From Octopus sinensis (taxonomy: Eukaryota), in the NCBI RefSeq assembly GCF_006345805.1, contig NW_021835937.1, forward strand, positions 1 to 37,119: a stretch of 37,119 bases of DNA, written 5' to 3'. A model generated the notes under the pieces. The model was not told the origin of the DNA. It saw only the letters and a list, made by a program, of their open reading frames with translations, and ran no database searches. Shown in pieces: positions 1,508-32,973 of the stretch; the stretch's first letter is position 1, and every line of letters starts with the position of its first letter. A program made the translations under genes and the position numbers.

Positions 1508-2888
1508 TCAATTTTTAGGTTTTCGGGTCCACGGTGTAACAGATTTTGGATATATTTTGGGTCCAGTGTATCCCTCACGGTTCCACACCGTCCTGGGCCT
1601 ACTCTCAGCAGGTGCGTCATCAAGACCAAGAACAGACCGAACATTACTGTCAGTCTCCTTTTCCTCCTTCTTTTCCCCATTAGTCCGCTGCTTTCCCCAC
1701 ACACCTTTGGCAGGTTTTGGTTTAATCACTTCTGGCCACTGAGCCTTCTCGTCTTCTTCCGTTGACGGTGTATTTGCGGAGACACGTGGACGGGGAGGAG
1801 GGGGAGTTGGGCCGAAAACATTCGAATAAATATTCTTCTTGGGGATTCTGCCAAGTCGGGAAGCCCAAAACCCACGCGGCATATTCCTTCGAGACACAGT
1901 CAGGGGATCGACCCTCAGCTCTGAGAAAAACGCAAATTCGCTAAGATCTTCTGTGTTTTCCCCAGAATTAGGATTTGGTGGGGTTGTGATGAAGTCGACG
2001 TAGTTTCGTGTGCAGTCCCCTGAGCAGTGCTGTGATGCAATGTGAAGATTCAGCTCCACTTCAGTGCTAAAGGCATTCAAAGGTCTCTGGTAGTAGCACA
2101 TATCAATCCGGCACACGAAATGAGTGGAATCCAAATGGTTATCCAAATCAGGCAAATCTCTATATTTAATTAATATACATATATTATAATTGAATTATTT
2201 AAATTGTAAATTATTTAAATTAATAACCTGAAAAAAACAAATGTTTCTGGACATAGTGGGCAGTAGTGGTGATCCAATTTTTGATGCGAATAAAGAGCAT
2301 TTGAGTCAAAAAAGCGCTTGTGGCATATTTTGCACGACGGATGCAGAGGAATATTCTGTTCAGCACAGTCGTAGCCCTCACTCCGGTGTCTGGCCAAATC
2401 CTGCCGAGTATAGTTCCTCCTCTCGTGCGTAAAGAGCTTAAATACACACAAAAACCAAACTTTGCAGTTATCAGTGCACAGGTCACAGTAATAGAGACCA
2501 TGGCACTTCTCCATGTGCACAACGTAGTTGGAAAAGAACCGAAATCGAGCCCTGTGTTGACAGAACTCGCACATGTGGTCGATCAGGTCGCACAAGTCGT
2601 AGTACGCGTCCTCGTCCTCTGCATATATAGAAGATTCTTTGATATTTATATATTTTGAGGTATCCACTGTGCTGAATTCTGTCCATTCGTTTTTGATTAT
2701 TAGCTTATGTGAGTTGGATTAATGTAAACCTTGTCATTCTGGTTACGACAGACTGGACAGGCGTTGTCGTTGCATAGGACTCGTAGTCTGGCAGCACAGG
2801 TGTAGCAGAGGCAGTGGTTGCATTCGCCGTATGCAAAAAGTTCGATGTTGTCCATGCAAATGGGACATTGTATATCATCAGTGGACAT
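1508..2888 (-). CDS. ZNF598: E3 ubiquitin ligase ZNF598/Hel2 homolog (RING plus C2H2 array), multi-exon
   Basis: CPICMDNIELFAYGECNHCLCYTCAARLRVLCNDNACPVCR RING, then FTHERRNYTRQDLARH, HPSCKICHKRFFD, HHYCPLC, THFVC, AFSTEVELNLH, matching ZNF598 order. Introns: about 2704-2729 (26 nt), 2437-2460 (24 nt), 2160-2227 (68 nt). Confidence 0.87.
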
Positions 2889-3059
2889 GACACTACAACA
2901 GCGTAGTTTGAATTATCTATTTATTTAAAGTAGATATTATAAATTTGCAATTTAAATTGATATTAAATTAAATATTTTATTCTGAATGATTCATTATTCA
3001 TTCATTAGATCAGAATAATTCATAAACATGTCAATATAATCTAATTTATATATTTTTGA

Positions 3060-3875
3060 TTACTTATTTGTGGTTTATTGACTCTTCCAACCCAGGAGAG
3101 TAGATGTCGTCTCTTTTGTAGTGTTTAAAATATCCTCTCAAGTGAAAACCTAGGAGAAGCTGGTGGAGAATTTTAAATCTGGTAGACAAATCGATATTCG
3201 TATTTAATCTTTGAAAAACTATTAATTCAGATTGATCAAAACAAATCAATAAAAACAGAATTTAAAAAGAAAACAAGAATTAAAATTCCATTTCAATATG
3301 TAATTGATAACATTGAATAAAATTCATGCCAATATTGAAGATCTCCAGAGATTACATTTCCAAGACATCAGAAATTAATGTTGGCAGTCAACCACGAGAA
3401 TGGTCTTTACACATTTTTAATCCAAAAGAGAGCAAACACTCTTGACTTTACTTTTAAACCTGCATGCCGTGCTTATATAAATTGGTCATAAAATGTGTGA
3501 ATAAAACAATATATGCTGATTATGATTTGAAGAGCAACATCGCAGGTCTATTTAGATTTAAAAATTCTTACTTCGATATGTCGGTGAATTTGTTAATCAA
3601 TTATTCGTGATTATTCTCAAATTTATTAATAAAACCTTTGCAGTTAACTTTTTTGGAGCTAGCGTTAGAATAAATATATTAAAATAAAGTTTCTTTTAAA
3701 TAACCCAAAAATCTAATTTCCAGCCAACTGCCAAGAAAATTAAAAATATTTAAAAGATAAAGAATATTTATGTGGAAGACAACTTTGCTCGGCGGAGACA
3801 TAGAGAGCGAGGAAAGCGAGGGACTAGCAGCAAATTCTCTTAAAAAGAATAGAACGATTTTCAACAATATGGAGT
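3060..3875. other. Possible unidentified multi-exon gene (strand uncertain)
   Basis: Stretches of higher complexity with short open frames and GT..AG segments of about 30 nt; no recognisable domain. Confidence 0.2.
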
Positions 3876-4587
3876 GAAAACCTTAATTAAATAGTGTAGC
3901 CTTAGTTAAATTTTGTTCTTTTTGTGATTAATATAAATAATCCACACAATTAAGCAAAAACTAGAAAAAATCCTTAATGTCTCACATTTAAAATTAATTA
4001 AAATAACTAACTTGTCTGTTGTCCTCTCTCTTGCTCTTGAAAAAAATTGTGTGATTGGCACAAATGAAACCTTAAGTACTTACGTGCTTCTGGCTTCGCT
4101 GACGTGCTGTTGTTAAAAAATATTTAATCGGAAGAACAAAATTCCAATGAATCAATAATTAATTATGTGATTTTCAAAATTTGACAGTTTGATTTGAATT
4201 AATTAAATAATCTCTTTGAAGAAAGAAGCAATTTTATGGACCAAACAAAAAAAACATATATGGCCACAATCATGATTTTTTGCATTTTAAATATGAAACA
4301 AGCATACTTGGAAATAGAGTTATTTTTGATGAATAGGAAAAAGAAAAGGTTGCACTCAAAGCTTGAACATTTTCGCATTTTAAATATTTGACTAAAACGA
4401 TGCAAAGCGACGTAAAATATAATGTTGCATTCAGTTACACTAGATGGCATTATGAGGTGTATTATTATGCATTTATATCGGAGATTTAAAATTTAAAAGC
4501 CTAAAAGATTGACAAATCACTCCACTTATTATGTCAGATAACTTTGCGGAAATGTAAAAGGTTGCCCATGTCACATAACATGCCTCC

Positions 4588-5600
4588 TTGACGTCAAAAA
4601 GCGAATTTAATATGGATCATTAAAGTGGTGTTTTTTATATTGTTCATTAATCTCTTTGAAATCACATAAAAGTTAGACATTTTTTTCAATCTGGGTAAGT
4701 ATGTTTCTTTTTAGTTTAAAATTGAGTTTATTATTACTAGCATTTTGGAAGAGCAAAAAAGTGATTTATTTAATTGAGGTCCAGTTTGTGTCGTACTTTA
4801 CTTGAGGTTATTCTTTCTTCCCCAAATCTTTTAACTAACATCCTCCAAGATCCACGGTTCTTTGCAATTTCTCTGAGCATATCCAAATTATCACCCGTTT
4901 TCAGCTTTTGTCTTACATTGGTCAGGTAGCACCTCTGGCAAACGTAAGTGAGGTCCTCACGGATTGAGTTGTTCAGTTTTCGCCAGAAATAGTTCTCCAT
5001 TGCTATGTTGCCAGGTGTCATCTGATCCATCAAAGGGTTTGACCAAATTGACGCATCTTGATTCGGTGATATCCACCAGGCTCAGTAGTCTTGTATCAAA
5101 TATTTTGTATAGATGCTCGCTTGCTATTTTCTTTGACCAGTTGATGCCAAGCAACAGACGGAGTGGTTTACAATAGAAGGACTCTAGTTTATCCATTAAG
5201 GCTTGCGAGACTTCCCAAGTTACAGCATTGTACGTTTTACAAAGGCATCGTATAGTCTTACATGTAATTGTGTGCTGATTTGTTTACGATGAACCCAGAC
5301 TGCTCCCATTTTTTTGAAGGCCGCGACGGCCAATTTGTTGTTAATGATATCTACAGGATCTCCAAGCAGCGACCCCAGTTTTTTACAATATCTCCAATTT
5401 TCATCAATTTGAGTTAATTCTCGGCGTATTTTGTCGGCACTGTCTTCGCGACATTAATTTTGATGAACCATTTTTCCAACACATCTGGCATCCTTGTCCA
5501 TATATGGTTTAATGTTTTCTCGTCGCTGGATATATAAGTCTGAAGTTTCTGAGCGCTTCCAGATTTGTCACAAAAAGTACTGGTGACAAGGAATTTAAAA
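4588..5600 (-). mobile_element. RTE-like LINE 3' portion (RT C-terminus plus 3' UTR), degraded
   Basis: KINVAKT, WRYCKKLGSLLGD, RLYDAFVK, GDNLDMLREIAKNRGSWRML; about 330 bp (4588-4915) is the reverse complement of 34655-34994. Confidence 0.8.
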
Positions 5601-8062: not shown

Positions 8063-11000
8063 TTACACAATTGGGAGTGGAGGATATAGAACACACTCTT
8101 CCTTAGGGTCTTCCTTGGGCTCATCTTTCTCGGTCAACTCTCCCACCAACTCAGGTGCAAGTTGCCTCAGTCGTTCCACAGTCTCGACCAACAATTCGGA
8201 ACCCGATTCCTGACGACAGAGCAACCTCATCGACTTGACAACCATCAAAACAGTCTTAAACTGATCTAAAATGCCATTTCTCTGAGAAATAGATAAGCCA
8301 AATTAACCAATGACTCGTTCTTGTCTGACGAGGCTGCCATTGCACAAACCAATTCGACAATTTTCTTCCAAAAAACACCAAAGCTGTCACAACTCGCAAA
8401 AAAGTTGACATTTCTTATAAAAATCTGAGGATATAAAAAATAAAAATACTTTGCAGAGCATGGAAACAGCCCTTATCCTCACCACGTCCTCCCCTTCCTG
8501 ACTGCGAGCCAACATTCGACTGAATATAGGGAAAATGATCTGAAATAGCCACACAACAGCACACCATGCTAAAACACTGATTCCACGTCTGACTGCCAAT
8601 GACGAACAACCGGTCATGCACAAGAGACTTTTGAATGCAGTCGAATGAGTACAATCTGATAACAGGACGATCGTCCTGAGTGTATAGTGCCATTTCTATG
8701 TAGTTCATCAGAATATACGGCTTAGGAGAACACGCCACCAGTCAGAACTCTTCACTCTCTCTGAACTAGCCAACTGCACACAAACAGAACTGGTCGCGTC
8801 CATAACCTGCAGAATACACATTCAAATCAACTTTCAGTGATAGTTTTGACAAATATTCCGTGGCTACTGAGGGTTCGACGTCCTGTAACGTTTTCTCCTT
8901 CTCAGTGTGACCTATTTAGTTCAAATTGTCAAAATAACATTGATAGACGGCCGAACACAGAGCTGCTATGAAATGGACGAATGATTCCAGGTGGGTCACC
9001 TCTGCACAAAACCCCCCGTTCACAAGCTGCTCGAGGATATCCACTCCGATAGACAGTTTGGTCATCTGTATTGCCCCGATGGGGATTCGGTCAGTGCTCA
9101 CATAGTCAAACCACCGACTCAAATCATCGCCGGCGGAACATTGAGTCTCTAAATGGAATTTCAACATTATTGGACAAACTTTGCTGACAGTGACTTATCA
9201 AATTATCAGGCAGGACCACACAGGCAGTGAATACTTCAATGACCAGAAAACATATTGGGAGACCGTCGGAACACTCCAGCAGTAAATAATGATTCTGCAG
9301 GAAAGTGGCCACGAAACCCACAAGCAGCAAAGATGTCCGGGAATACTCTATTTTGTCCAAATTCAAAGACAAGAAACAAGTCATTAAGCTCATCACCTCC
9401 AGAATTAAATAGTCCTTTTACCTCATATGGAATCACCTCCTGGTTTATGAAGGAAGTAAGTATTCGGAGATACCCGTGGATGACTTCCTCCACCAGTAAG
9501 GCCGGATAAGCAGAACTGGTAACCAAATGAAGCACACATGTTTTGACTGACTGGAAAAACAGTGACAGTCGATCTCTGTTAATGAATCCAACCACCCAAA
9601 CCGATTATTGATTGCAACTCGGACAAGAATGTCATAAAAAAGAAGAGAGGGTTCTGACATACTGCAACCGTGCACTCCCACTAGGCAATTTGGATCGAGA
9701 ATACAATCAGTCAGTATCTAAACAGGTCTGGGAGTTCTTGACTAACCTTAATAAATTCAACAAGGGATTGGCTGTGTAGGGACTTCATATTACTCACAAT
9801 CATTTCAATCTTCCATTCGGACACAATGCTCTGTGCCTTGCTCAATGATGGACATTCACCCCTCAAAGTGTTCTCGTTGTTGTTTGACGAAAAAAAGTTA
9901 AACAAAGACGAGAGTGCGCCTGTAGAGTTTTTTGAGGTTTTTTTGAGATCGAGAACTTTATTAAGAGAACGCTTCTTCCCACTTTCAAACAGACTGTCCA
10001 CCTGGAGTATATAAACAACGACCAACTTCAATCAAAGTTGATGGGAGGAGTCTGGCTGTGTATAAACTGAGGAGAGCCTCCAAAACATTCTTCCATCCAT
10101 CACGCATGAGATCCCCGTGCTGTGCCACCAAATCAAAAGCAGTTTTTCCAGCCAATTGCGCCTTCTCATTATTTGCAAAAATTTCGACAAAAGACGTTTT
10201 CCCGCCATTCTATTAAAAAATTGGTCAACCATTAAAAACGTGAGAATCATTAAGGAGATGCGACATTCTAAACAAGGCGATTGTGATCGAGTCAAAAATG
10301 GCAATCAAGTTAAAGTGGACTGCAATCGAAGCACATTTCCTAATCAATTAATGATATTTAATTAACTTGTAGGACTCGAGGATATCCTGTACTGACATTG
10401 CAGTTATTTCCTTATCAAAAACGTAAGATAGAGCAGCCACAGAAGAACTCCAGAAGAGAAGAAATATTTCAGAGTCACACAAACTCCCTTCAGCCTGGAT
10501 ATAACTGTCGTTGGTACAAGTTTCGTGTTTTTTCTACAAATAACAGCGACCAATACATTCCAGAGATATTTGTCTCTACTACTTCCACTCTTGGTGGCAG
10601 TTATTACAATCTCAGACATCCTAGACTACAAGCAGGTGACTAACTTGACAGAATTATATATCTGTTTGAGCATTTCTGTACATTCGTTCAGGTTTTTAGT
10701 CCCTCCGACACTCTCAATAAATTCCTGAGGAAATGAGCAATCAGGAAATACGTGACATGTCATTGGTTTGTTAGTGGCTTGTAGTAATTTGTTGTGCTGG
10801 TCCACGTTGAGGACCATTATTCCATTGGCCAGGAGAAATGCCTCGTCGTAACTCCCAAACACTCCCTCATTACACTTCTACCAATATCCACTCACCATCA
10901 CCATAAAACGCCTCACGAAGACCTCCAAAATATTCGCAATGACCGGGGCCTCGCCTGGCAAATGAAAGTCGTCGAGGAACTTCCGAATCGCAGAGTCCAT

Positions 11001-12925
11001 TCTCAGACCAGCAAAGTCATACGACCTATCATCATTGACATACAACACAACTCCAAGAAAGCTGTCAATACATCTCTGTTGCTCTGCTTGCCAAAGAATA
11101 TTCCGAGGGCAGTAATGTCGATATATTCGTAGTATTCTGATATAAAAGAGACCAAATCCGCGGGATCACAGCTCGGAACTGCCCCCAACTCCACAAGTCG
11201 TTGAAAACACCGGCTTGGACTGTCCCCAAACATTTTTATACACTCATGCACTCTCTGCAAATATTTTTGTGAAATAACCTTCTTGTGCTCCATTTTGTGA
11301 CTTATATCAACGGGGCTGAGTTTTTGTGGAGTTTGTAGAACACTGCAGTGGTTCCCGTGTCGATGTATCGTTCGGAATGTGTCTAAAACGTGGTTAGACA
11401 TTCCTACCTGACATGGGAGAGGACATTTGGTTCCGTTTGTAAATATGTTCGAGAGGAGACAACAGACTGCGGAGTGAAGACATGCAGCTGGCAGAAAAGA
11501 CACCATTCGAGGAAGATGTCCCAATAAATGACACTTGCTGCAATAAGTTACTCCCTCACCTTAAAAAGGGCCGAGATTATAAGTTCGAGGACATTGGCGG
11601 ACGAGGGGTGGCAATCATAGTTAACGTACAACTGGAGGGGCACATCTTCTTGACTCAGGAAGCCACACAACAGTTCACAGGCGAGGTCATTGGCCGCAGA
11701 CACACACGTCCCACTCCCCAGCCGGCCGACCAGTTTGACAATATATAACTGACCATTAATTTGAACACTACTTCGAATGGAATTCTCAAAAATGGCAGTA
11801 ACTTTGAAAACATGTTGAAGGACAGAATCAAAGACCGACTGAACAGATTGAATGAATTAGTCCCCGCCAACTAAATTAATTCATTGGTTAACCAATATAC
11901 AATAAATAGCTTTTTCGACATTTCTGTTCGAATGAGAGGAGTGAGGTGTGTCTGGGATGACAAATTAGGAGTTGAGAGGACAATCGAAAGCAATTCCAGA
12001 CCAAAAACAACTCGAATCTCGTCATTGTGTTTGTCTTCCACGTCAATCAGAGATACGAGAAATCTCAGAATCTCCCTCGTGCATTTGTTGGAGACTCGAC
12101 TATCCACTGAGGCATTAAGTAGCCCGTCAATACTCTCGGTGGTGTGGGAGTCCAAGGAAGAGGTGTCCTCGGCAGATGGTTTGTCTGGTTGAATCGAAAC
12201 TGAGGGCATATTTGTGAATATCAAATAAATTGAATCGGTTATTATTCCTTCTAATCTTTTACGAATCCACTCTTAAATAGTTAAGTATTAAATAAATATT
12301 GTAATTAAATAAAATTAATACTAACTGTTGAGGTGGAGGTCGAAATAAAACGAGAAGCACCACCGCAGAGAGTCGCAAATGAGACCACAAGACAGACAAG
12401 TAACCAAACTAGAAGTCAAAATTGCTCCAAAAATCTTTAAAAAAAACTTTCAGTGACCAACCTCCACAATATTGGCAACTAAAAATTCCCCATTTTCCCC
12501 ATCAGTGACACTTTTGATGCCAACAATCGAATTAACTGTGATGAAAGCGACATTCGACTTTACAGATCGGTCAATTTGGGCTAAAAATAGTCATTTCGAA
12601 TGTACAGTTGGACAGAAAATACAAAATCTTTTTTAGCGTTTTCAGGTTTAGGAGGGAGAATTCGATCGAGCATTCTGCAGAGCGGGATAGGGCGTCAACA
12701 AATGTCTTGATGACGGGAATAATGTCAAATTCTGTTTAAATTTAAATAAATTACTTTCGGTGCTGATATTTGTCTGTAAGGAATCGAATTCCTCGATTAT
12801 TTTGAGCATTGACTCTGTAATCTGGAATATGTATAAAATAGGTATTAAAGTACCATTTTTTGAGAAAAATTACATTTTAATAAATAAATGTGTGATTTTG
12901 TTAAGTCGAGAATATGGTTTGCCAT
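8063..12925 (-). CDS. GBF1: GBF1-type large Sec7 Arf-GEF (DCB, HUS, Sec7, HDS domains), many mini-introns
   Basis: EILRFLVSLIDVEDKHND, HUS box LYVNYDC (about 11625-11645), Sec7 GLRMDSAIRKFLDDFHLPGEAPVI with the catalytic Glu, LNVDQHN, KAQLAGKTAFDLVAQHGDLMRDGWKNV. Introns checked: 11026-11051 (26 nt), 12272-12325 (54 nt). Start at 12925 is inferred from DCB-like exons and is less certain. Confidence 0.9.
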
Positions 12926-13189: not shown

Positions 13190-16100
13190 AATTCCAAGAT
13201 CACCGAGAAAGATAGGTCAAAACTAACTAATTAGGTGATCCCTTCCTCCAACAACAGCTGGACTCTCCTTAAATGATCTTCTGATGACCCAACCGTAACC
13301 CCGAGACGGCCGCCTTCTGAGTAAGTTCAAACGTTCCGCTTTCGAACAAGCAATTGCAAACGTCCAGGCTGAGCAGGCATACCCAACCGTCGGGGCAATC
13401 ACTTGTTGGTAGACCTTGCTGACACAATCTTTCAGGGGGAAGGGACTCTTCTTTAACAGAGCTTTCAAGACGTTCCACTTCCGAAGACCTTTAGCTAGTG
13501 CCTCCTCCACGTGACATGAGAACGTAATTAAGGAGTTGAAAACCACGCCAAGGATCTTCTGGGTACGCGAAGAGGGAATAGGATTGTCTCCAATGAATAG
13601 TTCCGGTCCATTCTTGAATTTTCTATCAGTAGTGAAGAGGGTGAATTTGGATTTAAATGCAGACACACACAACATATTTGCAGATAGCCAATCACATACA
13701 CGGTTAAGGTGTGACTGAACCATTGCAACAGCCACAGAAGGAGATTTATCTCTTGCAGCGATAATCAGGTCGTCCGCATAGGATAAGAACATAATGTCTG
13801 GGTCATTAGTAATATGTAGGTCATGTAAAAATAGGTTAAAAAGGAGGGGAGATAAAGGGGAGCCTTGTGGGACACCATTGGGCAGTAGTCTTGATCTTAA
13901 AGTAGTATTGTCAATACGGACCCTTCCGCGTCGGCCAGTTAAGAAATTTTTCAACCACAGTTTGATGTTCGGATGTAAGTTCGAATCAAATATCTTCCGC
14001 GTTAGAAGTTTCCTCGGGACAGAATCAAAAGCCTTTTGTATATCAATGGATACTAAGGCCGTCCGTAATAAACTGGGAGACAGAACACAAGTGGGTCGTT
14101 GTGGAACGGTCTGGTCTAAAACCGTGCTGGAATTCTGGCAGTTGTAGAACAGGAGAGATTTGCGTTAATACGAGCTTTTCCAGTACTTTCGATAAGATAC
14201 AAGTTATTGAGATTGGGCGATATGAAGAGGGGGCATCCTTTGGTTTCCCAGGCTTTAGAATTGGCGTAATTAGGGAGTTTTTCCATATATTAGGAATCGT
14301 ACGTAAGTTGAGAATCGTACGTAAGTTGATGGAGTCGTTATATAGTCTTGATAGTACGGTCTGTGCCCGGGGTCCCAGGTGTTTGAGGTGAACAGCACAG
14401 ATCTTGTCGGGGCCACAAGCACGGGTGGGACGTAGGGATTTAATAGCCTTGTCAACATCATCCGGTGTGAAGAAGGTGGAATACAATTCTGGTCGTGGTC
14501 CGAGCCGTTCAGTATGTGGAGTGCGAGAGAAGTTTTTATGGCTGATCGATACATAGTACTTCATAATCTTGTTTGTAAGTTTGCGAGCGGGTTCCGAGGA
14601 ATTGTGGGCAACGGCCTCAGTTCCTCCGTCCTCCTCGCCGATAAGGCAATTGATCCTTCTTAGCGTTTTCCAAAAGGTGGCGCAGGAATTTCTGTGACAT
14701 AATCGTCCAACGAGACGACTCCACTTGAGTCCGTTATTAGTCCGGATCGGTTCAGAAATTTTAATATTCAACGAACGTATAGTATAATATGGTCATTGGA
14801 CTTGTTTTTCTTCAGGGCATCCCGTTCTTTGATAAGTGCAGGATTTGTGATGATAATCTTGGATTAAACTTCTTGTATGAAGCGACAGGTATAAATAATT
14901 TATCGGCTTTCAAAATGATAGTGGACAGGATCTTGGCCGTTCTTTCCACCGTGCAATTTTCCATAGTAAGATCAAGCAGGCAGTCGTCCACATACGACCC
15001 GAAACCATGCCAGTTAGCCTTCGAGTAATTTTTGAACTTCGTAGGACAGCGCATTGAACAGAAAGGCCTTCTAAGTCTCAGTACAATAGGGTTATGGTCG
15101 CTCGAGAAACCATAACGAACATTCCACTAGATCAGGGGTCACCAAACTTTTTGCACTCGCGGGCCGGATTGACCCCAACACAATGAACGCGGGGCGGAGC
15201 ACGTGCATAGGATTATAATTTTACTAGAAATTCATAAGTGTGTTTTTTACAATAAAAACTAATTTAAACAAAAATAAAGTAAACAAAAATTTTAATGAGA
15301 GCTATGGAATTGTGATCTTTTTTTGATAAGTTCATCAATATTTGGTTTTAAATTGCTGCATCCTATCATGAGAATTGATTTTAAGTGTCCGTCAGTCAAT
15401 CTTGCACGATGGGCAGACTTAACATATTTCATCCTCGAAAACGTTTGCTCACATTGGTAAGTTGTGCCAAATATAGAAATCATCTTTATCGCAAAATTCT
15501 TTAGTCTCGGAAACTCATCATCCTTGAGATATTCGTAGAACTCAGCGAGTTTGGTCCGTCTGTGACAATCTTTGAGCTGTTCATTTGATTGTAAGTCAAT
15601 AACTTCTAATTGTAATTCATGTTGAACATTTTCAACATTACAAGAAAATGGATTTTCGAACAAAATTATATCGCTTTCAATTTTGTCAAGTTCAGAAAAC
15701 TTATGTAAAAAATGATGTTTTAATTCTTTGATAATTCCAATTTGGAAAGTAATGTCGATCTCATTACAGTTTGCCTCACAAAAACTTTTAAAACAAGAAA
15801 AGTGTGAAAACTGACGTCCTTCATAACAGAGAGATGTTCGTGGCATATTAAACAATAAGCTTTCTGCTTTAATTCATCTTTCGCAAAAAAATACTTCAAT
15901 TCCCATAATTTATTGAATACACGGCATTCGCGGTCAACCTTTCTTTTCATATTAGACATAGCAACAAAGAAAAATTTAACGTTAATGCTGATAAGTTTTT
16001 TTTCGAATTAATCTTGCAAAATAGTTTAATTTTTTAATTAAAGTTTTTATTTAAGTTAATTATTAAGGTATTAATTGAATATCTCGAAATAGTGCGCGGG

Positions 16101-16600
16101 CCGGATAAAATGTTGTCGCGGGCCGGATCCGGCCCGCGGGCCGTAGTTTGGTGACGTCTGCACTAGATATATCCAGCCAAGGATGAAGTGCAGAGGGACA
16201 GGTCCGGGGATGTTGGGCTATCTCTTCTGCGGGTTGGTGTTCTTGTATGAGCGTATGGGTCGTTTAGAATAGTCAACTTATTGAATACGGAAAGGATGTA
16301 CTCGCCGCGAATGTCGGCCGGTTGAGACCGGACCCAGAGCAGATGCTTGGCATTTAGGTCGCCGCATAGCAGCAAGTCCTTCAGTCCGCCGAGTTTCAAT
16401 AAGTTGGGTGTGTATTTTGAGATAAAAGAGGTCGTCGAGCTTTGCGGTGGGACATATACATTGCATAATGTAAAATGTCTTGAGGGTGAAAAAAGAACTT
16501 CTATAGAGATTTGCTCCAAAATAGGGTCGCCTTCACACAGGGAGGATACGAATGTAGTGACATCGGTAAACACATGTCCTCCACCAAGACTTAATGCCTA
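13190..16600 (-). mobile_element. I/Jockey-group LINE ORF2 (APE endonuclease plus RT plus 3' UTR), interrupted by a hAT
   Basis: APE: LCNVYVPP, LLLCGDLNAKH, SPDLSL, SSDHNPI. RT: KPGKPKDAPSSYRPISIT, QHGFRP, GVPQGSPLSPLLFN, SYADD, ILGVVF. Several frameshifts and an 18-nt tandem duplication at about 14296-14330. Confidence 0.9.
15133..16160 (-). mobile_element. SPIN/Buster-type hAT DNA transposon, internally deleted, complete ends
   Basis: TIRs CAGGGGTCACCAAACT / AGTTTGGTGACGTCTG; 8-bp TSD CACTAGAT at 15125-15132 and 16161-16168; GCGGGCCG subterminal repeats; MKRKVDRECRVF BED N-terminus and FGTTYQCEQTFSRMK hAT C-terminus. Confidence 0.95.
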
Positions 16601-19510: not shown

Positions 19511-20232
19511 TCAAAATAAATCGTGATCCGAAGCAATAACATCGACCGTATTCCACGTAAGTTTACCTTCTGCGTCCTCAAAACATATCGGCATCTTCCC
19601 AGACTGAGTTTCACGAAATTTCGACTTTTCATTCAAGAACTATCAACTCTCAGACATCAGCAAATGCCTTTAACAGAAATTGGAGTATGTCCTTCTTATC
19701 TTTCCCAGCCGCAATATCAAATACTGATCTCCTGAACTACCAATACAGCCAATTGGAGTAGACTTTGTCCGCCATAAGCAAATCCTCCGTCTTTTTGGCC
19801 AACGACATGACTATTTCAATGTTTCCAGACTCAACAGCCCAATGTAGAGGAGTCATTCCCAACTTTCGGGTCAGTTGACTACCCTATACCATATCTACGA
19901 TATTGACATCCACTTCAGCGGACAGGAGTAATTGAACTGCGTCCAAGTGACCCATTTGACAGGCAATATGAAGAGCAGTTCGGTTTATTTTATTTTTAAT
20001 GTTCTTTTCGATACCCGCCACTAGAAGGGATTTGAGCATTTCGCAGTTCCCAGCATAAGCAGCGTGATGGAATGTTGTATTTCCCAACTGTAGGAATAAT
20101 AATAGATTTATTGGTTACATTGTCGGTAGAAAAACATATTGTTGGTTCTAATATTGATTTGGGAGAGGAGATCTTGGAATTTTTTACAGAATCAATAAAT
20201 GAACCACAAGATTTATTCATTTCAATTGACAT
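19511..20232 (-). CDS. GABPB1: GA-binding protein beta-like ankyrin-repeat protein, 5 exons, about 202 aa
   Basis: FSTDN|LGNTTFH, KNKINRTALHIA, DVNIVDM|LGMTPLHWA and DK|FRRSVFDIA align to GABPB FTTDW-LGTSPLH, RTKVDRTPLHMA, DVNAKDM-LKMTALHWA and SKFCKTAFDI. Introns: 20088-20118 (31 nt), 19863-19889 (27), 19737-19763 (27), 19640-19667 (28, GC-AG). Confidence 0.8.
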
Positions 20233-21852: not shown

Positions 21853-24746
21853 ATGCAATATCCATTTTTTGACGCTAAAAAACGAGAGGAGAACAGTGGA
21901 AGGAATATTCCAGACCCAAAGGATGTAAGAGACATTAAACAAAGCTTTAATCGTCATTGCACAACTCTCGCCTCAAGGACCGCAATATTGCTACCAAACG
22001 TGATTATTACATCTCTTTGGCTCACACGGTGTGCGACAAAATGGCTTCCCGGTGGATCAGAACGAGCCAACACCATCACAACTGGACTCCAAGGTTTTCC
22101 TTGATTTTATTTTTCCAGAGAATTTATTATTTGTCCATTGAATTCTACGTCGGTCGTCTTTTGATAAATTCCATGATCAACGTTGGAATAGACGGGCAGT
22201 GCAAAGAAGCCGTTTATCAAGTATGTCCAACATGTTCTTATTTAACAAGCTGGGACTAGATTTGGAAGAATTAGAAAACATGGAACCTGACATTGGTTTA
22301 GGAAATGGTGGACTGGGAAGACTGGCTGCCTGTTATCTTGACTCGATGGCTACTTTGGGCATTGCAGGCATGGGTTATGGACTGCGCTATGAGTATGGCG
22401 TATTTACTCAAGTAATTTACGATACCGACCATGTCTCAATTTTATTTAAATTAATTAAGAGAGAGGAGCTTAACAATTGGTTAAAGTACAGCAATCCCTG
22501 GGAGAGGTGCATCCAGGAATATATCGTTCCTGTTAATTTTTACGGAAAAACAATCAAAGTGGATGGACAAACACAGTGGATTGACACTCAAGTGACCTTT
22601 CTTTAATAAGTAGGTTGTGTATGCAATTCCCTACGACACACCTGTCCCCGGATATGGGAATAACCACGTCATAACTATGCGTTTGTGGGCTGCCAAACCC
22701 TCAGCTGTATTATTATTGGATTGCTGTAAGTTATTAGTTTTAGTCACTGTCTAGTCAATTCAGGAGATCACGTCCAAGCTATGAGAGACCCATACCTTGA
22801 TGAAAGCATAACACGTGTCCTCTACCCAAATGACGAGGTATTCATGCCCTTTATTTCAAGAGATTTGAAGGTAAGGAACTCCGTCTCAAACAAGAGTACT
22901 TCCTGGCCTCAGCGACTCTCCAGGATATTATTCGGCGGTACAAGGACTCGAAAGAACCTAGGACTTCATTCGACCAGTTTCCAGAAAAGGCAATTGGTCA
23001 TTATAAATTAGTAGGTGGCCATTCAAATGAACGATACGAGTCCATCCTTGGCTGTTCCTGAATTGATGAGACTGTTGGTGGACGTCGAAGGTCTGGATTG
23101 GTCTTATTCTTGGGATATCTGCATAAGAACTTTCGGATATACCAACCACACTCTCCTTCCCGAGGCACTCGAGCGATGGCCACTAAAAATGTTGACTAAA
23201 TTGTTGCCCAGAATAATGCAGATAATCCATAAAATAAATCGCAAGCATTTACAGGTTGAATGTGCAGTGATTTTGCAAGGCGGTCTCTGAGTTTTGGCCC
23301 AATGACGAGGATGTCTTGGAGAGAATGAGTCTGATTGAGAGGATCGTAAACGTGTCAACATGGCCTATCTTTGCATAGTGGGGTCACATTCCGTCAACGG
23401 AGTCGCCGAACTTCACTCAAAATTAGTAAAAACTGACGTGTATATATATTTTGTATAAATCACAAGATTTCCTGATTTTTATAAAATGACTCCTGCCAAG
23501 TTTCAAAACAAAACCAACGGAATCACTCCCAGGAGATGGCTAGTCTACTGCAATCCATCTTTGACAGATTTTATTCGCCGTGTACGTTTAAAGTATTACT
23601 TTTAGCAAATTGGGGACGGATTCATAACAGATTTGCGTGAGTTGAACAAACTGAGGCCACTTGTGTCAAATCAACAAATTATTGACGAGATTTGTTTGAT
23701 AAAACAGGTTGTGTGTCCTCAGTATGTCATAGAGTAATAAAAATAAATTCGCTTTGTATGTTAAAAAGTTGTTTGGATTCTTGATTGACCCCTCGACCAT
23801 GTTTGATGTGCATATCAAACCAGTTCAAGAAAGTAAACGACACCTTCTGAGCTGCCTTCATATAATAACGCTCTACAACCGCCTCAAACGGGTCAAGGCT
23901 GGTTTGGATGACTACACTGTCGTCCCCAGGACTGTCATAATTGGGGGGAAGGCTCCTCCCGGCTACAGAATTGCAAAACTCATCATCAAATTGATATGCA
24001 ATGTGGCTGATGTGGTGAACAGTGATCCGGAGACCAATAAAGACCTGAGGGTGTTTGTCCTTCCGGATTATAAAATGTCGTTTGCAGAGAAAATGGTCCC
24101 TGCAGCTGATTTGAGTGAACAACTCTCACTCGCAGGAACTGAAGCGTCTGGAACTGGAAACATGAAATTTATGGTTGGTCAGTTGATTTATTGCCAGTTG
24201 AACGGGGCTGTCACTCTGGGGACGTTTGATGGGCCCAATGTAGAAATGGCCGAACAGGTTGGGATGGAAAATATATTTATATTCGGAATGACAATCCACG
24301 AAGTTAAGGAAAATTACACTTATGGGTATTTTGTAAGTAAAGAAGTGTAGATACAATCCTCGTTTTAATTATCCAAGGAGTCTTCAATTAATAGAATGTA
24401 TTGAACAAATAAGAGACGGATTTTTCAGCAGGGAGGAGCCTAATTTATTATGCGAAATATGTCAGACTATGCTCTCTGATGATCCTTTCATGGTCATGAG
24501 TGACTATGATGATTATATTCAGAAGCAGCTTTTGGTAGAGGCTGCTTACTTGGTATGTTGTGTGCCGTATTTTGATAGAATTCTAATGTGTGGAATACAA
24601 TGTGCTTGAACAACATCATTGCTGCTGGGTTCTTCTCTAGTGACCGTGCTGTGGCTCAGTATGCTTCCGATATTTGGAACGTTCCCTTGTCCAGGGATAT
24701 ACTGCCTGTCTTAGATGAATCTCAAGAATTCTCTGGTTTGAATTAG
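21853..24746 (+). CDS. PYG: Glycogen phosphorylase (GT35), full length, 15 exons, divergent active site
   Basis: [53 protein letters not shown]. Fourteen introns of 22-29 nt: 22094-22118, 22221-22249, 22433-22459, 22592-22613, 22726-22754, 22838-22860, 22990-23014, 23255-23279, 23440-23466, 23582-23605, 23708-23732, 24174-24197, 24326-24350, 24553-24578. Three 1-nt deletions must be corrected to keep frame. Confidence 0.95.
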
Positions 24747-25484: not shown

Positions 25485-25689
25485 GCGGTTCTCAACCGTG
25501 GTCCCCAGAAATTTTCGAAAAATAAAAATATATTAAAGTTAAAACTAATTGTACAATTAAATATAAATCAAAAACATTGAAATTAATCAAGCGGTTCTCA
25601 ATCGTGGTCCCCAGAAAATTTTTAGTGGTCCCCGGAATTTTCGAAAAATAACAATATATTAAATTTAAAACTAATTGTACAATTAAGTA
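25485..25689 (+). repeat. Tandem duplication of the Buster left end (about 110-bp unit)
   Basis: GCGGTTCTCAA.CGTGGTCCCCAGAAA...TTTTCGAAAAATAA...AAAACTAATTGTACAATTAA occurs twice; the second unit is split by the Ginger insertion and resumes at 27136. Confidence 0.85.
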
Positions 25690-27130
25690 TGTCACAGGCC
25701 ACAACTGTTACTCCGCCAGATATGTTACACCAACATCAAATTGTCAAGTTGGAAAAAACTTAAAACAGAATCCTTTGGTATATTTCTATGAATTCAAAGA
25801 AAACTTATAAATTTTTAAAAAAATATGATGTTTTTTTAAATTACAAATACACGTTAAAAATGCGTTTAGTGCAAGTAACAAAGGAAGACTTAGAATTACT
25901 TAAGGAACTTAAGAGCAATCCTGAGCTCGTATTCGTCAGCAGGACGCTTTCGCGGATGCAAAGATCAAGACTACTGAAATTAGCAAATAAATTTGATTTT
26001 TTGGATGGAGCTCCATATATCACTAAAGATGGACTTAACAAAAGAGCTCATGAAATTGCTTCGTTATTTCAGAACATCTTTTATTATATTGGGCCACCAT
26101 TGATCTTGCATACAGACAATGGTAAAGAATTTTGCAATGACCATGTCGCCCGTTTATGTGAAAAGTACAAAATAAACATGTCCGTGGACGACCAAGGGCT
26201 CCTTGGGTACAGGGACAGGTGGAAAGGTTGTAAGATAAATTATTCTTTAGACTAAATCAGAGTATCAAAAGATGGATTTCATCTAAAAGTTACTCTGATG
26301 AATGTTTTGGACGCTATTGCGATATAATCAAAGACATTGTTTTTGATTATAACAATACTGTCCATTCCACACACAAAAAAAGTCCCATTTAATCTATTTA
26401 TGGGCATAAAATATCCTATTGAAACATCAGAGGAGGAACTAGAATCATTGTTATTGCAAAATGATGACATAGAATATTGGAAGAGGAAAGGAATGAAGCG
26501 TATGTAAATATTCTGTTGGCAGCTGATAAAATGGCTCAGAGAAGAAAATGGAAGTATGACGAGGCTACTTTTAGTGTAGGAGAGATAGTAATCTTAAGGT
26601 ATTGGGATGTATAAACATGTAATTTAGGCAAGATAATGACGCTAACAAACGACAATATCCACTTTATGATGGATTAGAGATGGTGAAATACAAATTGTGG
26701 CAAAAGACGATTTTGTAGTAACATACAAAGTGAGACAGGTGACATGTATGAGAAAATACATGTTTCACGCTTAATTAAAATTGGGAATGATCCTTCTTTT
26801 TTGTGATTCTTGATAGAAAACGTTTTAAACTAATAAGAGGCTTTTAAAATTTTTTTATTAAAAAAAAAGAATAATTATTTATAAAAAAAAGATATGGATA
26901 AGCCAAAATAAATAGATTGCTAAATAATTTAAAACTCATATTTTACACGGTATGTTGGTTTTTGGGAAAAAATTCATGTTTCAGTCCAAATTTTCTATTC
27001 AGAAAAGCATATTTTTGCGAACAATTAGGTTATGCTTTGTATTAATTTTTAATTTTAAAAGTTTTTATTTCTATTTATATGAATTTTTAGTGTAACATAT
27101 CTGGCGGAGTAACAGTTGTGGCCTGTGACA
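25690..27130 (+). mobile_element. Ginger2/TDD-type integrase DNA transposon, internally deleted, nested in Buster
   Basis: Perfect 41-bp TIRs starting TGT (25690-25730 / 27090-27130); 5-bp TSD AAGTA (25685-25689, 27131-27135); ILHTDNGKEF and GRPRAPWVQGQVER|LNQ motifs; first catalytic Asp region missing. Confidence 0.92.
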
Positions 27131-28452
27131 AAGTATAAATCAAAACATTGAAATTAATCTGATTTGATTAGCGTGGTTTATCATTCTAGTTATGGTTAAC
27201 AAGAATCGTCGTCTTTGGTCGGATTCTTACGTACAATTTGGATTCATTAAATTCATTGCCCCAAATAATGAAATAAAGGCAAAATGCATGATTTGCCACA
27301 AAATTTTGGGAAACAATTCACTGAAACCTTCTCAACTTAGGCGCCATAAAGAGTCTGTACACCCAGAAATCCGATTTTTTCTGTAGCCGATTTTTTTAAC
27401 ATTTTAAATGAGTTTAATTTGTCAATGCAGGGTAAAATTTTTATTAATTTATTTAAAGGTCTTTATATATCAATTGTCGAGGTCAATCAAATAATAATGG
27501 CTTTTAAAAAAAGTTATTATTGTGGATAATGAAAATAAAAAAAGGAATAACATCAATGTTCCCAATGCTTGAATATCATCTCGGACACAACCCACCGGAT
27601 AATGTTCTTCTAAGTCTGATAATCAAACATCTGGAAAATCTCAAGACAAAATTTGATGATTATTTTCCTGTTGAAGACCCAATTCCAAACTGGATCGTTC
27701 AACCTTTCTTGACCTCATTTAAAGAATATCAGGAACTCAATTTTCAGCAGAGCTTGATTGAACTTCAATGTAATCAGTCTGCTCAGATTATTTTCAAATG
27801 TACTTCATTATTAGATTTTTGGTATTCTCATTAATAATTACTTTTTATTGTTAGGTGTCAGATGGCGAAAGAATTCCCCATTTTGAGTAAAACTGCATTG
27901 GAATCAATACTTGCATTCCCCACTACTTATCACTGTGAAATGGCGATGTCGTGTCTGACTTTTCTAAAAACAAAATATAGAAATAGACTACGGGTACAAG
28001 ATGATATGCGAGTAGCTTTGTCGAACATAGAGCCTGATATAAGTAAAATTATTCTGAGCAAACAAGATCAGAAATCTCACTAAATTACTATTAAATTTTC
28101 TGTTATTTTCATAATGTTCATGTTATTCTTATAATAAATATTCGAACATGTCTAAACCTGGCCCTGACGAGGCCAAAAATTGTGCGCTAATACCAAAAAA
28201 TGTTTATTTTATTTAAGGTGGTCCCCACAAAATTTTATAGTGCAAAAGTGGTCCCCAGTCTAAAAAAATTGAGAACCGCTGTATTAGTACATATTATATT
28301 TATACCTAAAACCTTTAAAAAATCAGCTTTATCGTGTTTCTTAATTCCTCAAAATTTATTTAACTAATTTTTGATTAAAATAATGTTTTTATAGACCTGA
28401 TTATCTAAAATTATATACAATCGATCCTTTTTTAAAAAACCAAAATTAATAA

Positions 28453-29956
28453 CTAAGAACAAAGAAATTTCCCCGTAAACTACGATATAAGTAAAGACCC
28501 ACCTTTAAGTAATACTGGCAAATCTCCACTTCCTTCACAATCATAGAATATTCAGTCTGAGAACCCGTGTAGTCACAACTAGAGTTACTAAAACGTGGCC
28601 ACCCACAACATATCCACAGTAGTCGTTCGATTTTTTCCAGTTGATTCACAAAAGCTACCATTTGTGTAAATTTGTCGTCGAGGCCTGCCACTATTAAAAC
28701 ATGTGTAAATACTCTAAAAGATTATCACTTTGTTTATCGTTCAAATTTTCCAACGGGTCGTACTGTCCCAGAGAATAAGTCTCTCGAGAACTCTCATTCT
28801 TAAAACAAGTGAACCACAATGTCCTACCAAACTAATTTGTTTGACATATTTCCCAAAGCAGAAAACAAAAGTCCACAACGAATTGTTCTAAAACATTAAA
28901 GTTTTCAATCACTCCGGACACACAGTTGTCTCCACTGTAGAACTCGTGAATGTCAGTCCCTTCGAAGCCTTTGTGGGTGTCCACCTTCCCTCCCTAAGAA
29001 TTACCAAAATGGACCCACAGTTAAATTGAGACTCGTTTCTATCAATTCCGTCAGTTCGGAGACCGTCATTTCATTTGGTGCGGGGATTTTTAAATTATCA
29101 TTTTTGGGCAACTCATCTTGGTAACACGAAATTATATTCCGTTGCTGAGAATTTCTGGAAAAATCGAGAAACACGGCAAAATACCGAACTTTCCTCTCAT
29201 AAGAACAAAGTGTTTGTAATCCAATCGCAATTTGATAGACGCACGTACTGACCTCAGATATAGAAATTATTGACGGTTCAAATTGATCAAAACAAACATA
29301 GTAGACCATAACGTGCCGAGGAACATTCGTGGACAAACAAATGTCCCCGTCAGTGTAATTGACTGCCACATACGCATGGGCTGAGTAATATCGGGTTGAA
29401 AGTGACTCGAGGAATTTGACGTCTTGGACAGTCACATTCAAATCCTCGTCTTCTAAAATAGTGTCATTAACATATCCCATAAAGTTCATTTTCTCGTGTT
29501 TTTCTTTCTAAGGACATGGCGATAGGGGTACCTTGTCATTTCCGGAGTAGAATTGATGGACGTACTTTCCGTGGCACACCTCATATGTCCAGTACCCCAC
29601 GTTCTCAGTTTTTTATTTGTGGATTACTATGGAATGGCAGTAGTGGGATCTGAGGATTGCCTCGATGGTAGATGGGCCGAGGTTAAGGAATTCGATGGAA
29701 GTGGGGACCTGAGGTGAGTAGAGTTGGGATTTACGATTTGATTAGGAGTTGAGTACCAGCGTTTATTTTCGAAAATAAGAAGTGAATTGTTTTCGTCGTT
29801 TTTTATCTAGAAATTTTATATTTTTATTGAAATTACAAAAAGATTAGTTTCGTTGAATTTAATGTCGGAAAATTGGAATTCGATCGAGTCGTCATAATTT
29901 GGATTATTGCTGCCCGTCAGGCAACAAAATAGTGATATAAACAAAATATCCAACAT
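28453..29956 (-). CDS. ERLEC1: ER lectin ERLEC1/XTP3-B homolog (signal peptide plus two MRH domains), multi-exon
   Basis: MLDILFISLFCCL signal peptide; MRH1 GYWTYEVCHGKYVHQF...YTDGDIC...VYYVC...ISEVSTCVYQIAI..LCS; MRH2 WTFVFCFGKYVKQ...YTNGSFC...EVEICQY; introns of about 22-30 nt. Confidence 0.86.
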
Positions 29957-30099
29957 ATGAATATATTTAACGACCCACAATAACAAACTGACTTATACGT
30001 ATATTAATTTATTTTTAAAAAATGTTAAAAATAATAAAGTTAAAATTGCTGATATTTTTGTTCTTCTAATCATCCGGGTTCCTTTAGGAAAAGAGTTCA

Positions 30100-30750: not shown

Positions 30751-30829
30751 AGTTATAAACTTGGTGAAAGTGCTAATAATAATACTGGGAAGGAATTTAT
30801 TGGAACGATTGCATGAAAAAGCCACTAAA

Positions 30830-31580
30830 ATATGCTGAACCCAAATATTGCCGAAATGGCAAAAAAACAAAAAGACATCCAATTAAAAATTGAAAACACC
30901 AATAACCAGAAAGGAAAAGAAAAACTCAACGTAGGAAAATACCGAAAACAATCAAGAAAGAAAATTTGAAATCCGTGGAAACTTTATTAAACCCTCGAAT
31001 ATCAGAAGTCGGAGATTTAAAGCAGATGTATGCAGCCATGAGCCTACTGCGTCGATAAAAAAAACTAAGACAGTTAAGACTTTTTTTCGGCATCAACTGA
31101 TTGAAACAAATCAAGAACTCCACTTTATATCGTACCTGCAATAGTAGCCCCGTCAGGATGAACATTAACGAAGCTTGCAAGGGCCTATTTAAGCACATAC
31201 TAAGGTTCTTATGCAAACTGGGCAATATAAAATAACAAATCGGCGTTCCGAAAACGTCCACGACTAACAATACCTACTGTTTTCTCAGCGCATTAAAAGA
31301 CAGCTAAAAATGGAAACCACCTTGATAGTCTCAGGAATATAGTACGCAACCTCGCATGTTGTAAAAATATGATCAAAAAAATATGTGAAATATGTGGGCA
31401 CTGAATTAGTTTTTCTTTATTTTATGTTCATATAACAGTGCTAATAATTATCCAGGCTGACGTATTGGGGATAGAAAGGGGACAAACTGCAGAATGCACA
31501 ATGACTAAACTCCCCTTTTATGACCAGAAAGTATCAGAATTAGCGTGTGTCTACAATTAGGTCTGAACATTAACAGTCAA
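30830..31580 (-). other. Possible unidentified gene, head-to-head with PCBD
   Basis: Open frame 30926-31270 plus GT..AG segments (e.g. CAG|GTACG...TCAG); no consistent model or domain recognised. Confidence 0.2.
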
Positions 31581-31641
31581 GGAATCTTTTCCACAAAAAT
31601 TATTTTTTATATTATATGATTTTTAATATAAATTTAAAACC

Positions 31642-32097
31642 ATGCTGTTACGTCCTAATGGTGCATTTCTACAACTGAGAAAGTTATTAAGAAATTATGT
31701 TTAATCATTAATAATATTCCAGTCATGTATTGACAACTGTCGACCACTAGTCGGTCAGGAGAGAACAGAAATGTTAACCAAACTGGAGATTACAGGTTGG
31801 AAGGTCATCCAGTCAAAAACGTATCTGGCAATTGAAAAAGGACTAAAATTCAAAACATTTCAAGAGGTACATAAATTTGACTAAAAATGAAGACATGGAA
31901 TTTTTTGAACGACATTGCCCGGGAATCTGACAGGAGGAATCACCACCCTCGACTCACCACGACATTCAACAGAGTCCTAAACCTCATTTTTATCGTAGGT
32001 CAAAATAACTTTGTACACTCACACCGCAAAGGACATTACATTTGCAGACATAACCTTAGCTCACTTTATCGACAGTCTATTTGATGAATATAAATAA
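31642..32097 (+). CDS. PCBD: Pterin-4-alpha-carbinolamine dehydratase (PCD/DCoH), 4 exons, with N-terminal extension
   Basis: Spliced product ...ERTEMLTKLEITGW...FKTFQE|TWNFL...NHHPRL...FNR|VKITLYTH...DITLAHFID; catalytic HHP and TH retained. Introns 31699-31722 (24 nt), 31867-31892 (26), 31974-31998 (25); the last two sit where I recall human PCBD1 exon junctions. Mostly missed by the ORF track. Confidence 0.9.
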
Positions 32098-32184
32098 AAT
32101 CAAATTCTAATAAAAAACTTTTTGGATAAAAAATAATAATTTTTTAAAAACATTTATTATTAAAAACAAAATAAACTAAATTCA

Positions 32185-32973
32185 CTACCTACGTTCGTGG
32201 ACTCTTCGTTTGTGTGTATGCGTTTGTTTGCCATTCCTGTAATCCCTTCCTAAAAATAATTAAATATAACAAAAACAGACTTTTATCGACCAATTCCAAA
32301 CTAGTCATTGATGTCTTGAAATAACTACAAATAATCACCTCATTTTCCTGTGTTGCTCTCAACTGCCTGTCCATTTCCGCGTTCTGTCGTTTCACTGAAG
32401 GGTTAAATATCACAGAATACAAATTTGGTCGTAGTAACACTCAGGAGGGTAGGCTGAGGGGTCGTACACGTCCTGGGGATATCAACAGCCAGCATACTTT
32501 GGGGAAATTAGAGCCATATTCGTCAATCTTGAGAAATTGAATCATTTTTTCATAAATACTAAACTGAAACAGTTTTGGCAGCACCATGGGTTCTTAAAGT
32601 CCTTCCTCGACATAATAATCTTGTTCAGGTCGTACCCATCAGCAGCATAGCAGTCAAATTTGTACTATTATTAGCTGGGGAGGTCCCTGACTTGTAATTC
32701 GGAAGGGAAAGGAGAGGAATGTTCTCTTTCTGGCAAATGGGCATTTTCTCGTCCAATTCCGAAGTATTTTAATAATTTATTTTCGTCTTTGAGTGGACAT
32801 GATGAGTCAATAAGGACTATTTGTGGATCATGGGGATTTGTAGGGGTGGGGATTGTTTCTTGGTGGTCTACTGATTTGTCCATTATTTGTATTGGGGGTC
32901 CTTCATTGGATGACTCATCGTCGCTTTTATAGACCACTAGTGATGCATGGTTCATTATTTGTTTATTCTGCAT
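32185..32973 (-). CDS. SAP30BP: SAP30-binding protein (HCNGP domain), multi-exon
   Basis: Spliced DLNKIIMSRKDFKNP|CIYEKMIQFLKIDEYGSNFPK|DVYDPSAYPPECYYDQI|LKRQNAEMD matches HCNGP MNYIIQRKKEFRNPSIYEKLIQFCAIDELGTNYPKDMFDP; introns of about 24-31 nt. Confidence 0.86.

Follow-up and report, generated by a model that had tools for sequence, protein, structure and literature searches.

Mini-introns at ancestral positions in a 37-kb contig labelled Octopus sinensis point to a dicyemid parasite

The window analyzed here is the entire contig VCDQ01006213.1 (37,119 bp) of the Octopus sinensis assembly GCA_006345805.1 (ASM634580v1). A six-frame map revealed pieces of conserved animal proteins spread across shifting frames, amid many decayed open reading frames (ORFs) of transposons. 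When single pieces were searched against Pfam and solved structures, they matched glycogen phosphorylase, a Sec7 guanine nucleotide exchange factor (GEF), a ZNF598-type RING, an MRH/PRKCSH lectin and ankyrin repeats. Six genes could be recognized: a ZNF598-like gene, a GBF1-like gene, an ankyrin-repeat gene, a glycogen phosphorylase gene (PYG), an ERLEC1-like gene and an HCNGP/SAP30BP-like gene. All six need GT/GC..AG introns of ~22–30 nt to yield conserved proteins, and the question addressed below is to which organism genes of this kind belong.

Genes and mini-introns of the window

Spliced alignments were made with a protein-to-genome aligner written for this analysis, in which GT/GC..AG gaps were the only ones permitted. 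In five genes, 40 introns were delimited with a median length of 26 nt and a mean of 27 nt, and 35 of them are shorter than 30 nt. The introns of the HCNGP-like gene (27, 26 and 25 nt) lie within the range of this set. The intron segments start with GT (once with GC), end with AG and contain ~67% A+T. At the 5′ site, position +3 shows a weak A/T preference (17 A and 14 T among the 40 introns), and positions +4 to +6 show little preference save for a mild excess of T at +6 (22/40); T is also mildly enriched upstream of the terminal AG. Forty sites do not suffice for comparing sequence logos.

Removal of the introns lifted partial or sub-threshold Pfam matches to full length. The spliced core of the GBF1-like gene matched Sec7 in one stretch with 137 bits (profile 4–183/183), compared with 27.6 and 31.8 bits for single exons, and it matched HUS with 60.6 bits (profile 4–161/161), a domain unmatched before splicing. 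The ERLEC1-like product reached 75.4 bits for PRKCSH (profile 1–74/74), and none of its exons matched singly. The HCNGP-like product reached 79.6 bits (profile 3–81/94), while its middle exon alone gave 17.8 bits, under the cut-off. In the ZNF598-like gene, the RING_ZNF598 match rose from 55.7 bits with the first exon (profile 4–53/90) to 67.7 bits with the 420-aa spliced product (profile 4–85/90). A preliminary description of this DNA had proposed seven genes in which introns mostly of 22–33 nt restore conserved proteins. The intron class was borne out by the length distribution and by the restored domains, and six of the genes were verified by spliced alignment or Pfam. We identified no seventh cellular gene in the window, where the remaining ORFs resemble transposon remains.

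The clearest case is PYG. Its joined product of 843 aa covers 99–100% of animal glycogen phosphorylases with 55–57% identity, belongs to family GT35 (Pfam PF00343) and matches solved structures at E 6e-64 across the motif GTGNMKF. For the database search, the product was assembled from three reading pieces, with 2 nt omitted at each of the two frame breaks between them and with neither added bases nor read-through of stops. All conclusions on PYG rest on alignments with database proteins. The 14 introns of PYG (22–29 nt) comprise 13 of the GT-AG type and one GC-AG, and 12 of the 14 cannot be retained, since they either have a length not divisible by three or contain an in-frame stop. The spliced alignment scored 2226, compared with 51–75 for reversed or shuffled DNA.

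Two PYG introns deserve a separate remark. Intron 7 has a GC donor in both known copies of the gene, and no in-frame GT alternative is found nearby. The largest reading piece aligns end to end with solved structures but for 8 extra residues between NMKFM and LNGA, which are the translation of intron 12. This intron lies three codons past the lysine that binds pyridoxal phosphate (PLP), and its retention would add 8 residues and leave the protein unbroken.

Intron positions and a second copy of the phosphorylase gene

The positions of the PYG introns were compared with those of Panthera PYGM (19 introns) and Solemya velum PYG (15 introns, of 313–5,516 bp), whose exons were mapped exactly from genomic loci. 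For 13 of the 14 PYG introns, both comparison genes have an intron at the matching codon. Codon and phase are shared by 12 of the 14 in the window and by 13 of the 14 in an intact second copy described below. The hypergeometric probability of such a coincidence is ~1e-29. The preliminary description had claimed, by comparison with exon junctions of human PYGL, that 13 of the 14 phosphorylase introns occupy ancestral sites, and the gene structures of Panthera and Solemya confirm that count. The only private site relative to both genes is that of intron 12 (683/0), a candidate for a lineage-specific intron gain.

A second copy of the region is present in the same assembly. In a sensitive protein search, the ERLEC1-like exon found two matches: XP_036355984.1 (100%; ‘uncharacterized protein LOC118761904 [Octopus sinensis]’), encoded on VCDQ01006213.1 itself, and XP_036354904.1 (99%; ‘uncharacterized protein [Octopus sinensis]’), encoded on VCDQ01002408.1, a contig of 1,033,805 bp. 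The locus taken from the latter contig (L003) is 97.8% identical to the window over 21501–25690 and 99.1% identical over 27131–37118. Its PYG gene has a fully open frame of 842 aa with the same 14 introns. Divergence is uneven, with 1.6% across PYG and 0.5% over 27131–37118, and amounts overall to 0.5–2%. A cluster of six substitutions in 19 nt (22757–22775) separates the two PYG copies. The segment 25691–27130 has no counterpart in the second copy and marks a transposon insertion for which the copies are polymorphic. Positions 1–21500 of the window, including the ankyrin gene and the GBF1 region, found no counterpart in the 6.5 kb of the second copy that lie beyond (L003 16529–23029); this loss of alignment upstream of PYG suggests that the copies differ structurally or that one of them carries a large insertion.

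Comparison of the copies also locates three single-base gaps that break the PYG frame in the window (Table 1). Because a base is missing at 22080, the intron after codon 81 seems to be 2 nt off in the window, and only the AG at 22120, 2 nt downstream, closes its frame. As the assembly is based on PacBio reads, the gaps may be long-read consensus errors; alternatively, they may be lesions of one allele. 

The frame breaks bring up the possibility that the mini-introns are artefacts, in other words that the genes are decayed pseudogenes whose frame shifts and stops were bridged by chance GT..AG pairs. The three breaks in PYG are real, a 17-nt intron in the GBF1-like gene and two doubtful junctions in the ERLEC1-like gene may be work-arounds of the alignment, and the aligner was permitted no gaps other than GT/GC..AG. 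Such an explanation would, however, have to account for 13 of 14 gaps falling exactly on ancestral sites, for a second copy that is open over its whole length with the same introns, for the poor scores of reversed and shuffled DNA, and for intron lengths tightly clustered at 22–30 nt. In addition, RefSeq's own model XP_036355984.1 removes the 30-nt intron 29184–29155, the sole indirect support for splicing. We therefore regard an artefact as extremely unlikely.

Origin of the contig

The deposited and RefSeq-annotated label says Octopus sinensis, and the contig might accordingly be genuine octopus DNA, with genes that are native or that came in a large transfer from a parasite to its host. GC (guanine plus cytosine) content, 36.7% in the window, may fail to tell host from parasite. 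Gene structure and protein divergence argue otherwise. The median intron of O. sinensis measures 1,520 bp (PMC10700109), so that the introns of the window are ~60 times shorter and its genes do not have the structure of host genes. The PYG protein is 55–57% identical to every bilaterian tested, a mollusc included, whereas those bilaterians are 68–83% identical to each other. It is no nearer to the bivalve Solemya (55%) than to a mammal (56%), while mollusc and mammal share 73%; Solemya PYG is 70–75% identical to the other bilaterians compared, and no molluscan affinity of the window PYG was found. In a single-gene tree of 12 taxa, the PYG branch is ~ten times longer than those of other bilaterians. 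Moreover, the two copies belong to two contigs, of 37 kb and 1.03 Mb, that were deposited separately. The presence of a near-identical copy on a contig of the latter size speaks for co-assembled foreign DNA rather than a small insert in an octopus chromosome, and the difference between the copies fits the heterozygosity of 1.24% published for Dicyema japonicum (PMC6736024). An octopus origin is thus extremely unlikely. The preliminary description had anticipated that, under a cephalopod or fish label, the scaffold would probably turn out to be parasite DNA; the label is indeed that of an octopus, and the proteins are non-molluscan and very fast-evolving.

Among animals, introns shorter than 30 bp at conserved positions have been reported in dicyemids and myxobolid myxozoans only (PMC13644364). 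The window resembles the former in its genome statistics. In Dicyema sp. (Zverkov et al. 2019, PMC6543705), a draft genome from another species and another host that we compared by intron statistics, the median intron is 27 bp and two thirds are shorter than 30 bp; in the window, the median is 26 nt and 35 of the 40 introns stay below 30 nt. D. japonicum (Lu et al. 2019, PMC6736024; also Ogino et al. 2010, cited in PMC6543705) was isolated for genome sequencing from renal sacs of O. sinensis, the species under which the window is deposited. Its genome has a GC content of 36.7%, 48.9% repeats with many long interspersed nuclear elements (LINEs), and low gene density, and it combines ultra-short spliceosomal introns with a conserved exon-intron layout. 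The window has the same GC content, a low gene density, 13 of 14 PYG introns at conserved animal positions, and remains of LINEs, hAT elements and integrases that occupy ~40% of its length on a rough reading of the ORF map. Dicyemid splice signals amount to about GTa ... AG and lack a clear polypyrimidine tract, the 5′ motif of D. japonicum being reported as a reduced ‘GTa’ (PMC13644364); the window, with little beyond GT and a weak A/T at +3, is consistent with this motif. A difference is found in the mean intron length, 38.2 bp in D. japonicum compared with 27 nt here, which is expected if a few long introns raise the published mean.

Altogether, these observations make it very probable that the window stems from the nuclear genome of a dicyemid mesozoan, either D. 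japonicum or a close relative, which inhabited the renal sacs of the octopus that was sequenced and whose DNA was co-assembled with that of the host. The octopus individual of ASM634580v1 differs from the hosts of the D. japonicum genome, so a Dicyema of another species or strain may be the source. The assignment draws on intron size, host, GC content and repeat content, all compared with dicyemids through published genome statistics. Together with the divergent PYG, these same features support the proposal of the preliminary description that the DNA stems from a dicyemid or an animal parasite of similar reduction; the choice of a dicyemid over other reduced parasites is our inference.

If so, the housekeeping genes of the parasite would have kept the ancestral animal exon-intron layout, with every intron shrunk to ~22–30 nt and with splice signals reduced to a 5′ GT (rarely GC), a 3′ AG and an A/T-rich interior. 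By analogy with D. japonicum and the myxobolids, for which U2-type splicing has been argued from conserved U2 small nuclear RNA and U2AF (PMC13644364), the short segments are presumably true introns removed by a U2-type spliceosome: ordinary introns, perhaps near the minimum that it tolerates. The parasite DNA would then have been co-assembled into O. sinensis ASM634580v1 and deposited as VCDQ01006213.1.

Two other parasitic origins were considered. One is a myxobolid myxozoan, a parasitic cnidarian. Henneguya, Thelohanellus and Myxobolus have median introns of 22–27 bp, conserved intron positions and reduced splice motifs (Hadjez et al. 2026, PMC13644364), and intron size by itself cannot separate them from the window. 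Their hosts, however, are fish and annelids, and the source record is that of an octopus. The GC content of H. salminicola is lower (29.1%), and myxozoans are described as relatively transposon-poor, with variation among species (PMC13644364), whereas LINE and hAT remains abound in the window. Neither PYG nor GBF1 had a myxozoan protein as its closest match. Thelohanellus gene models, which we take to be public, would be expected among those matches were the contig myxozoan. A myxobolid origin is accordingly very unlikely.

The other is an undescribed reduced parasite or symbiont of the octopus, neither dicyemid nor myxozoan, with convergent mini-introns. Further mini-intron lineages are expected (PMC13644364), and the likeness to dicyemids is one of genome statistics. 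On the other hand, dicyemids are the parasites of octopus renal sacs in the papers cited, D. japonicum comes from the same host species, and every measurable genome statistic fits it. This possibility is just as improbable as a myxobolid. The orthonectid Intoshia linei, a reduced spiralian parasite, resembles the window in its short introns and fast-evolving proteins; its median intron of 57 bp, with most introns above 30 bp (PMC6543705), is nevertheless about twice that of the window, and it is not a parasite of cephalopods. A dicyemid thus remains the preferred source.

Several observations pull in the opposite direction and have to be set against a dicyemid origin. The three frame-breaking gaps of PYG are not explained by mini-introns. 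The two PYG copies differ by 29 nonsynonymous and 5 synonymous changes (ratio ~1.6), as if the gene were unconstrained, and the window copy may be error-laden or decaying; in the ERLEC1-like gene, the corresponding figures are 2 and 5 (ratio ~0.1). No transcript evidence of splicing was found with a 247-aa spliced PYG segment that spans five mini-introns. Its best match had 64% identity, which indicates that the collection searched holds no PYG transcripts from Dicyema or octopus kidney. The identification itself relies on genome statistics and host, and for none of these genes did a protein search bring up a Dicyema entry; neither the full-length spliced PYG nor a rough concatenate of GBF1 found a relative above 57% and 33% identity, respectively. 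The 12-taxon PYG tree does not place the long branch, and a spiralian origin is not demonstrated by it. Finally, the GC content of the octopus may be close to 36.7%, so that the GC match may be of little use in telling octopus from parasite.

Cephalopod kidneys are also inhabited by Chromidina ciliates, and ciliates have tiny introns. A ciliate origin was rejected: the genes are of animal type (GBF1, ZNF598, ERLEC1, HCNGP), TAG and TGA are both stops, and all exons are open in the standard code.

That dicyemid introns of ~26 nt lie at ancestral positions is known biology, and the window illustrates it in clean textbook fashion. The possibly new element is the existence of mislabelled contigs with ‘octopus’ proteins in RefSeq, which is apparently unreported: no prior report of dicyemid contigs in ASM634580v1 was found in the literature searched. 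It appears that parasite DNA makes up one contig of this RefSeq reference genome together with at least one companion of megabase scale. We also consider it rather likely, with less confidence than the origin of the window itself, that the O. sinensis assembly and the derived RefSeq/UniProt proteins contain megabases of dicyemid genome, at least the 37-kb and 1.03-Mb contigs, apparently as two haplotypes or strains 0.5–2% apart. If this is true, a substantial second dicyemid genome, possibly from a species or population other than the published D. japonicum, lies unrecognised in the host assembly, and entries such as XP_036355984.1 and XP_036354904.1 belong to the parasite and not to the octopus. 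Parasite gene models would have spread through databases under the name of O. sinensis, and one of these models fuses a parasite exon to antisense transposon sequence. Entries of this kind can mislead work on cephalopod gene families, horizontal transfer and “octopus-specific” genes. Conversely, the contigs could serve as additional dicyemid genome sequence. Because parasite proteins are so divergent, similarity-based screens may miss such contaminants, and the intron-length signature alone can flag them.

Other features and database annotation

Table 1. Coordinates of genes, introns and transposon remains in the window. PYG intron sites are given as codon/phase; ‘shared’ means common to Panthera PYGM and Solemya PYG
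Feature	Position	Strand	Description
PYG gene	21853..24746	+	15 exons, 14 mini-introns; PLP-lysine motif GTGNMKF present
PYG intron 1	22094..22118	+	25 nt; 81/0 (after codon 81, phase 0 in the second copy); shared
PYG intron 2	22221..22249	+	29 nt; 115/0; shared
PYG intron 3	22433..22459	+	27 nt; 176/0; shared; in frame, stop-free
PYG intron 4	22592..22613	+	22 nt; 220/0; shared
PYG intron 5	22726..22754	+	29 nt; 257/1; shared; donor GTAAGT
PYG intron 6	22838..22860	+	23 nt; 285/0; shared
PYG intron 7	22990..23014	+	25 nt; 333/0; shared; GC-AG
PYG intron 8	23255..23279	+	25 nt; 413/0; shared
PYG intron 9	23440..23466	+	27 nt; 467/2; shared
PYG intron 10	23582..23605	+	24 nt; 506/0; shared
PYG intron 11	23708..23732	+	25 nt; 540/0; shared
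PYG intron 12	24174..24197	+	24 nt; 683/0; private; in frame, stop-free
PYG intron 13	24326..24350	+	25 nt; 725/2; shared
PYG intron 14	24553..24578	+	26 nt; 793/0; shared
PYG frame break 1	21955..21957	+	one base fewer at 21956 than second copy (CATTG vs CATTTG)
PYG frame break 2	22079..22081	+	one base fewer at 22080 than second copy
PYG frame break 3	23337..23341	+	one base fewer at 23337 than second copy
Insert without counterpart in second copy	25691..27130	+	1.44 kb; integrase-core (rve) ORF at 25764-26252
ZNF598-like E3 ligase gene	1508..2888	-	RING and C2H2 fingers; 4 exons
ZNF598-like introns	2729-2704, 2460-2437, 2227-2160	-	26 nt; 24 nt (in frame, open); 68 nt; read from sequence
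GBF1-like Arf-GEF gene	8066..12726	-	HUS, Sec7, C-terminal HDS-like region; both ends approximate
GBF1-like core introns	11900-11871, 11771-11749, 11559-11534, 11051-11026, 10901-10878	-	spliced alignment
GBF1-like core introns	10751-10725, 10644-10621, 10550-10534, 10366-10340, 10239-10210	-	spliced alignment; 10550-10534 (17 nt) doubtful
GBF1-like core introns	10026-10002, 9746-9718, 9601-9576, 9421-9397	-	spliced alignment
GBF1-like C-terminal introns	8564-8540, 8449-8425, 8307-8282	-	spliced alignment
Decayed LINE	13226..16597	-	apurinic/apyrimidinic endonuclease and reverse transcriptase; Pfam RVT_1, Exo_endo_phos_2
hAT transposase remnant	15295-16007	-	nested in the decayed LINE; Pfam Dimer_Tnp_hAT; site of a RefSeq gene call
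Ankyrin-repeat gene (small)	19650..20232	-	introns 19889-19863 and 19763-19737, each 27 nt; Pfam Ank
ERLEC1-like endoplasmic reticulum lectin gene	28446..29836	-	two MRH/PRKCSH domains; both ends approximate; at least 7 introns
ERLEC1-like introns	29836-29807, 29531-29508, 29184-29155, 29018-28994	-	30, 24, 30 and 25 nt; spliced alignment
ERLEC1-like introns	28912-28888, 28827-28799, 28606-28579	-	25, 29 and 28 nt; spliced alignment
ERLEC1-like doubtful junctions	29638-29604, 28700-28685	-	spliced alignment
XP_036355984.1 RefSeq model	24939-29489	-	chimera: ERLEC1-like exon and two distant ‘exons’
HCNGP/SAP30BP-like gene	32410..32973	-	introns 32691-32665 (27 nt), 32584-32559 (26 nt), 32497-32473 (25 nt); read from sequence

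In the GBF1-like gene, spliced alignments delimited 14 core mini-introns and at least three more toward the C-terminus. The best database matches of the rough concatenate are named GBF1 and share 24–33% identity with it. The 17-nt intron is an outlier in length, and an in-frame stop is found at ~12570, within a weak N-terminal (DCB-like) alignment; both may hide further single-base errors of the kind seen in PYG. In the ankyrin-repeat gene, alignment to the ankyrin consensus supports at least two introns and joins four repeats in frame. The decayed LINE lies a few hundred bases past the 5′ end of the GBF1-like gene (~12726).

Scans of the window for Rfam families, transfer RNAs and tandem repeats gave nothing informative. 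Ten ORFs of the window had no exact match in the protein collection, because the few RefSeq models of the contig are spliced and raw ORFs are not on record. In the region covered by the annotation look-up (14936–37119), RefSeq calls two genes, a hAT transposase fragment and a chimeric ERLEC1 model, and leaves PYG unannotated. The chimeric model, XP_036355984.1, joins the ERLEC1-like exon through ‘introns’ of 3,031 and 716 nt to two ORFs that are antisense to transposon sequence. An annotation pipeline tuned to the host is unable to model these mini-introns. In UniRef, the chimeric protein bears the name ‘Endoplasmic reticulum lectin 1’.

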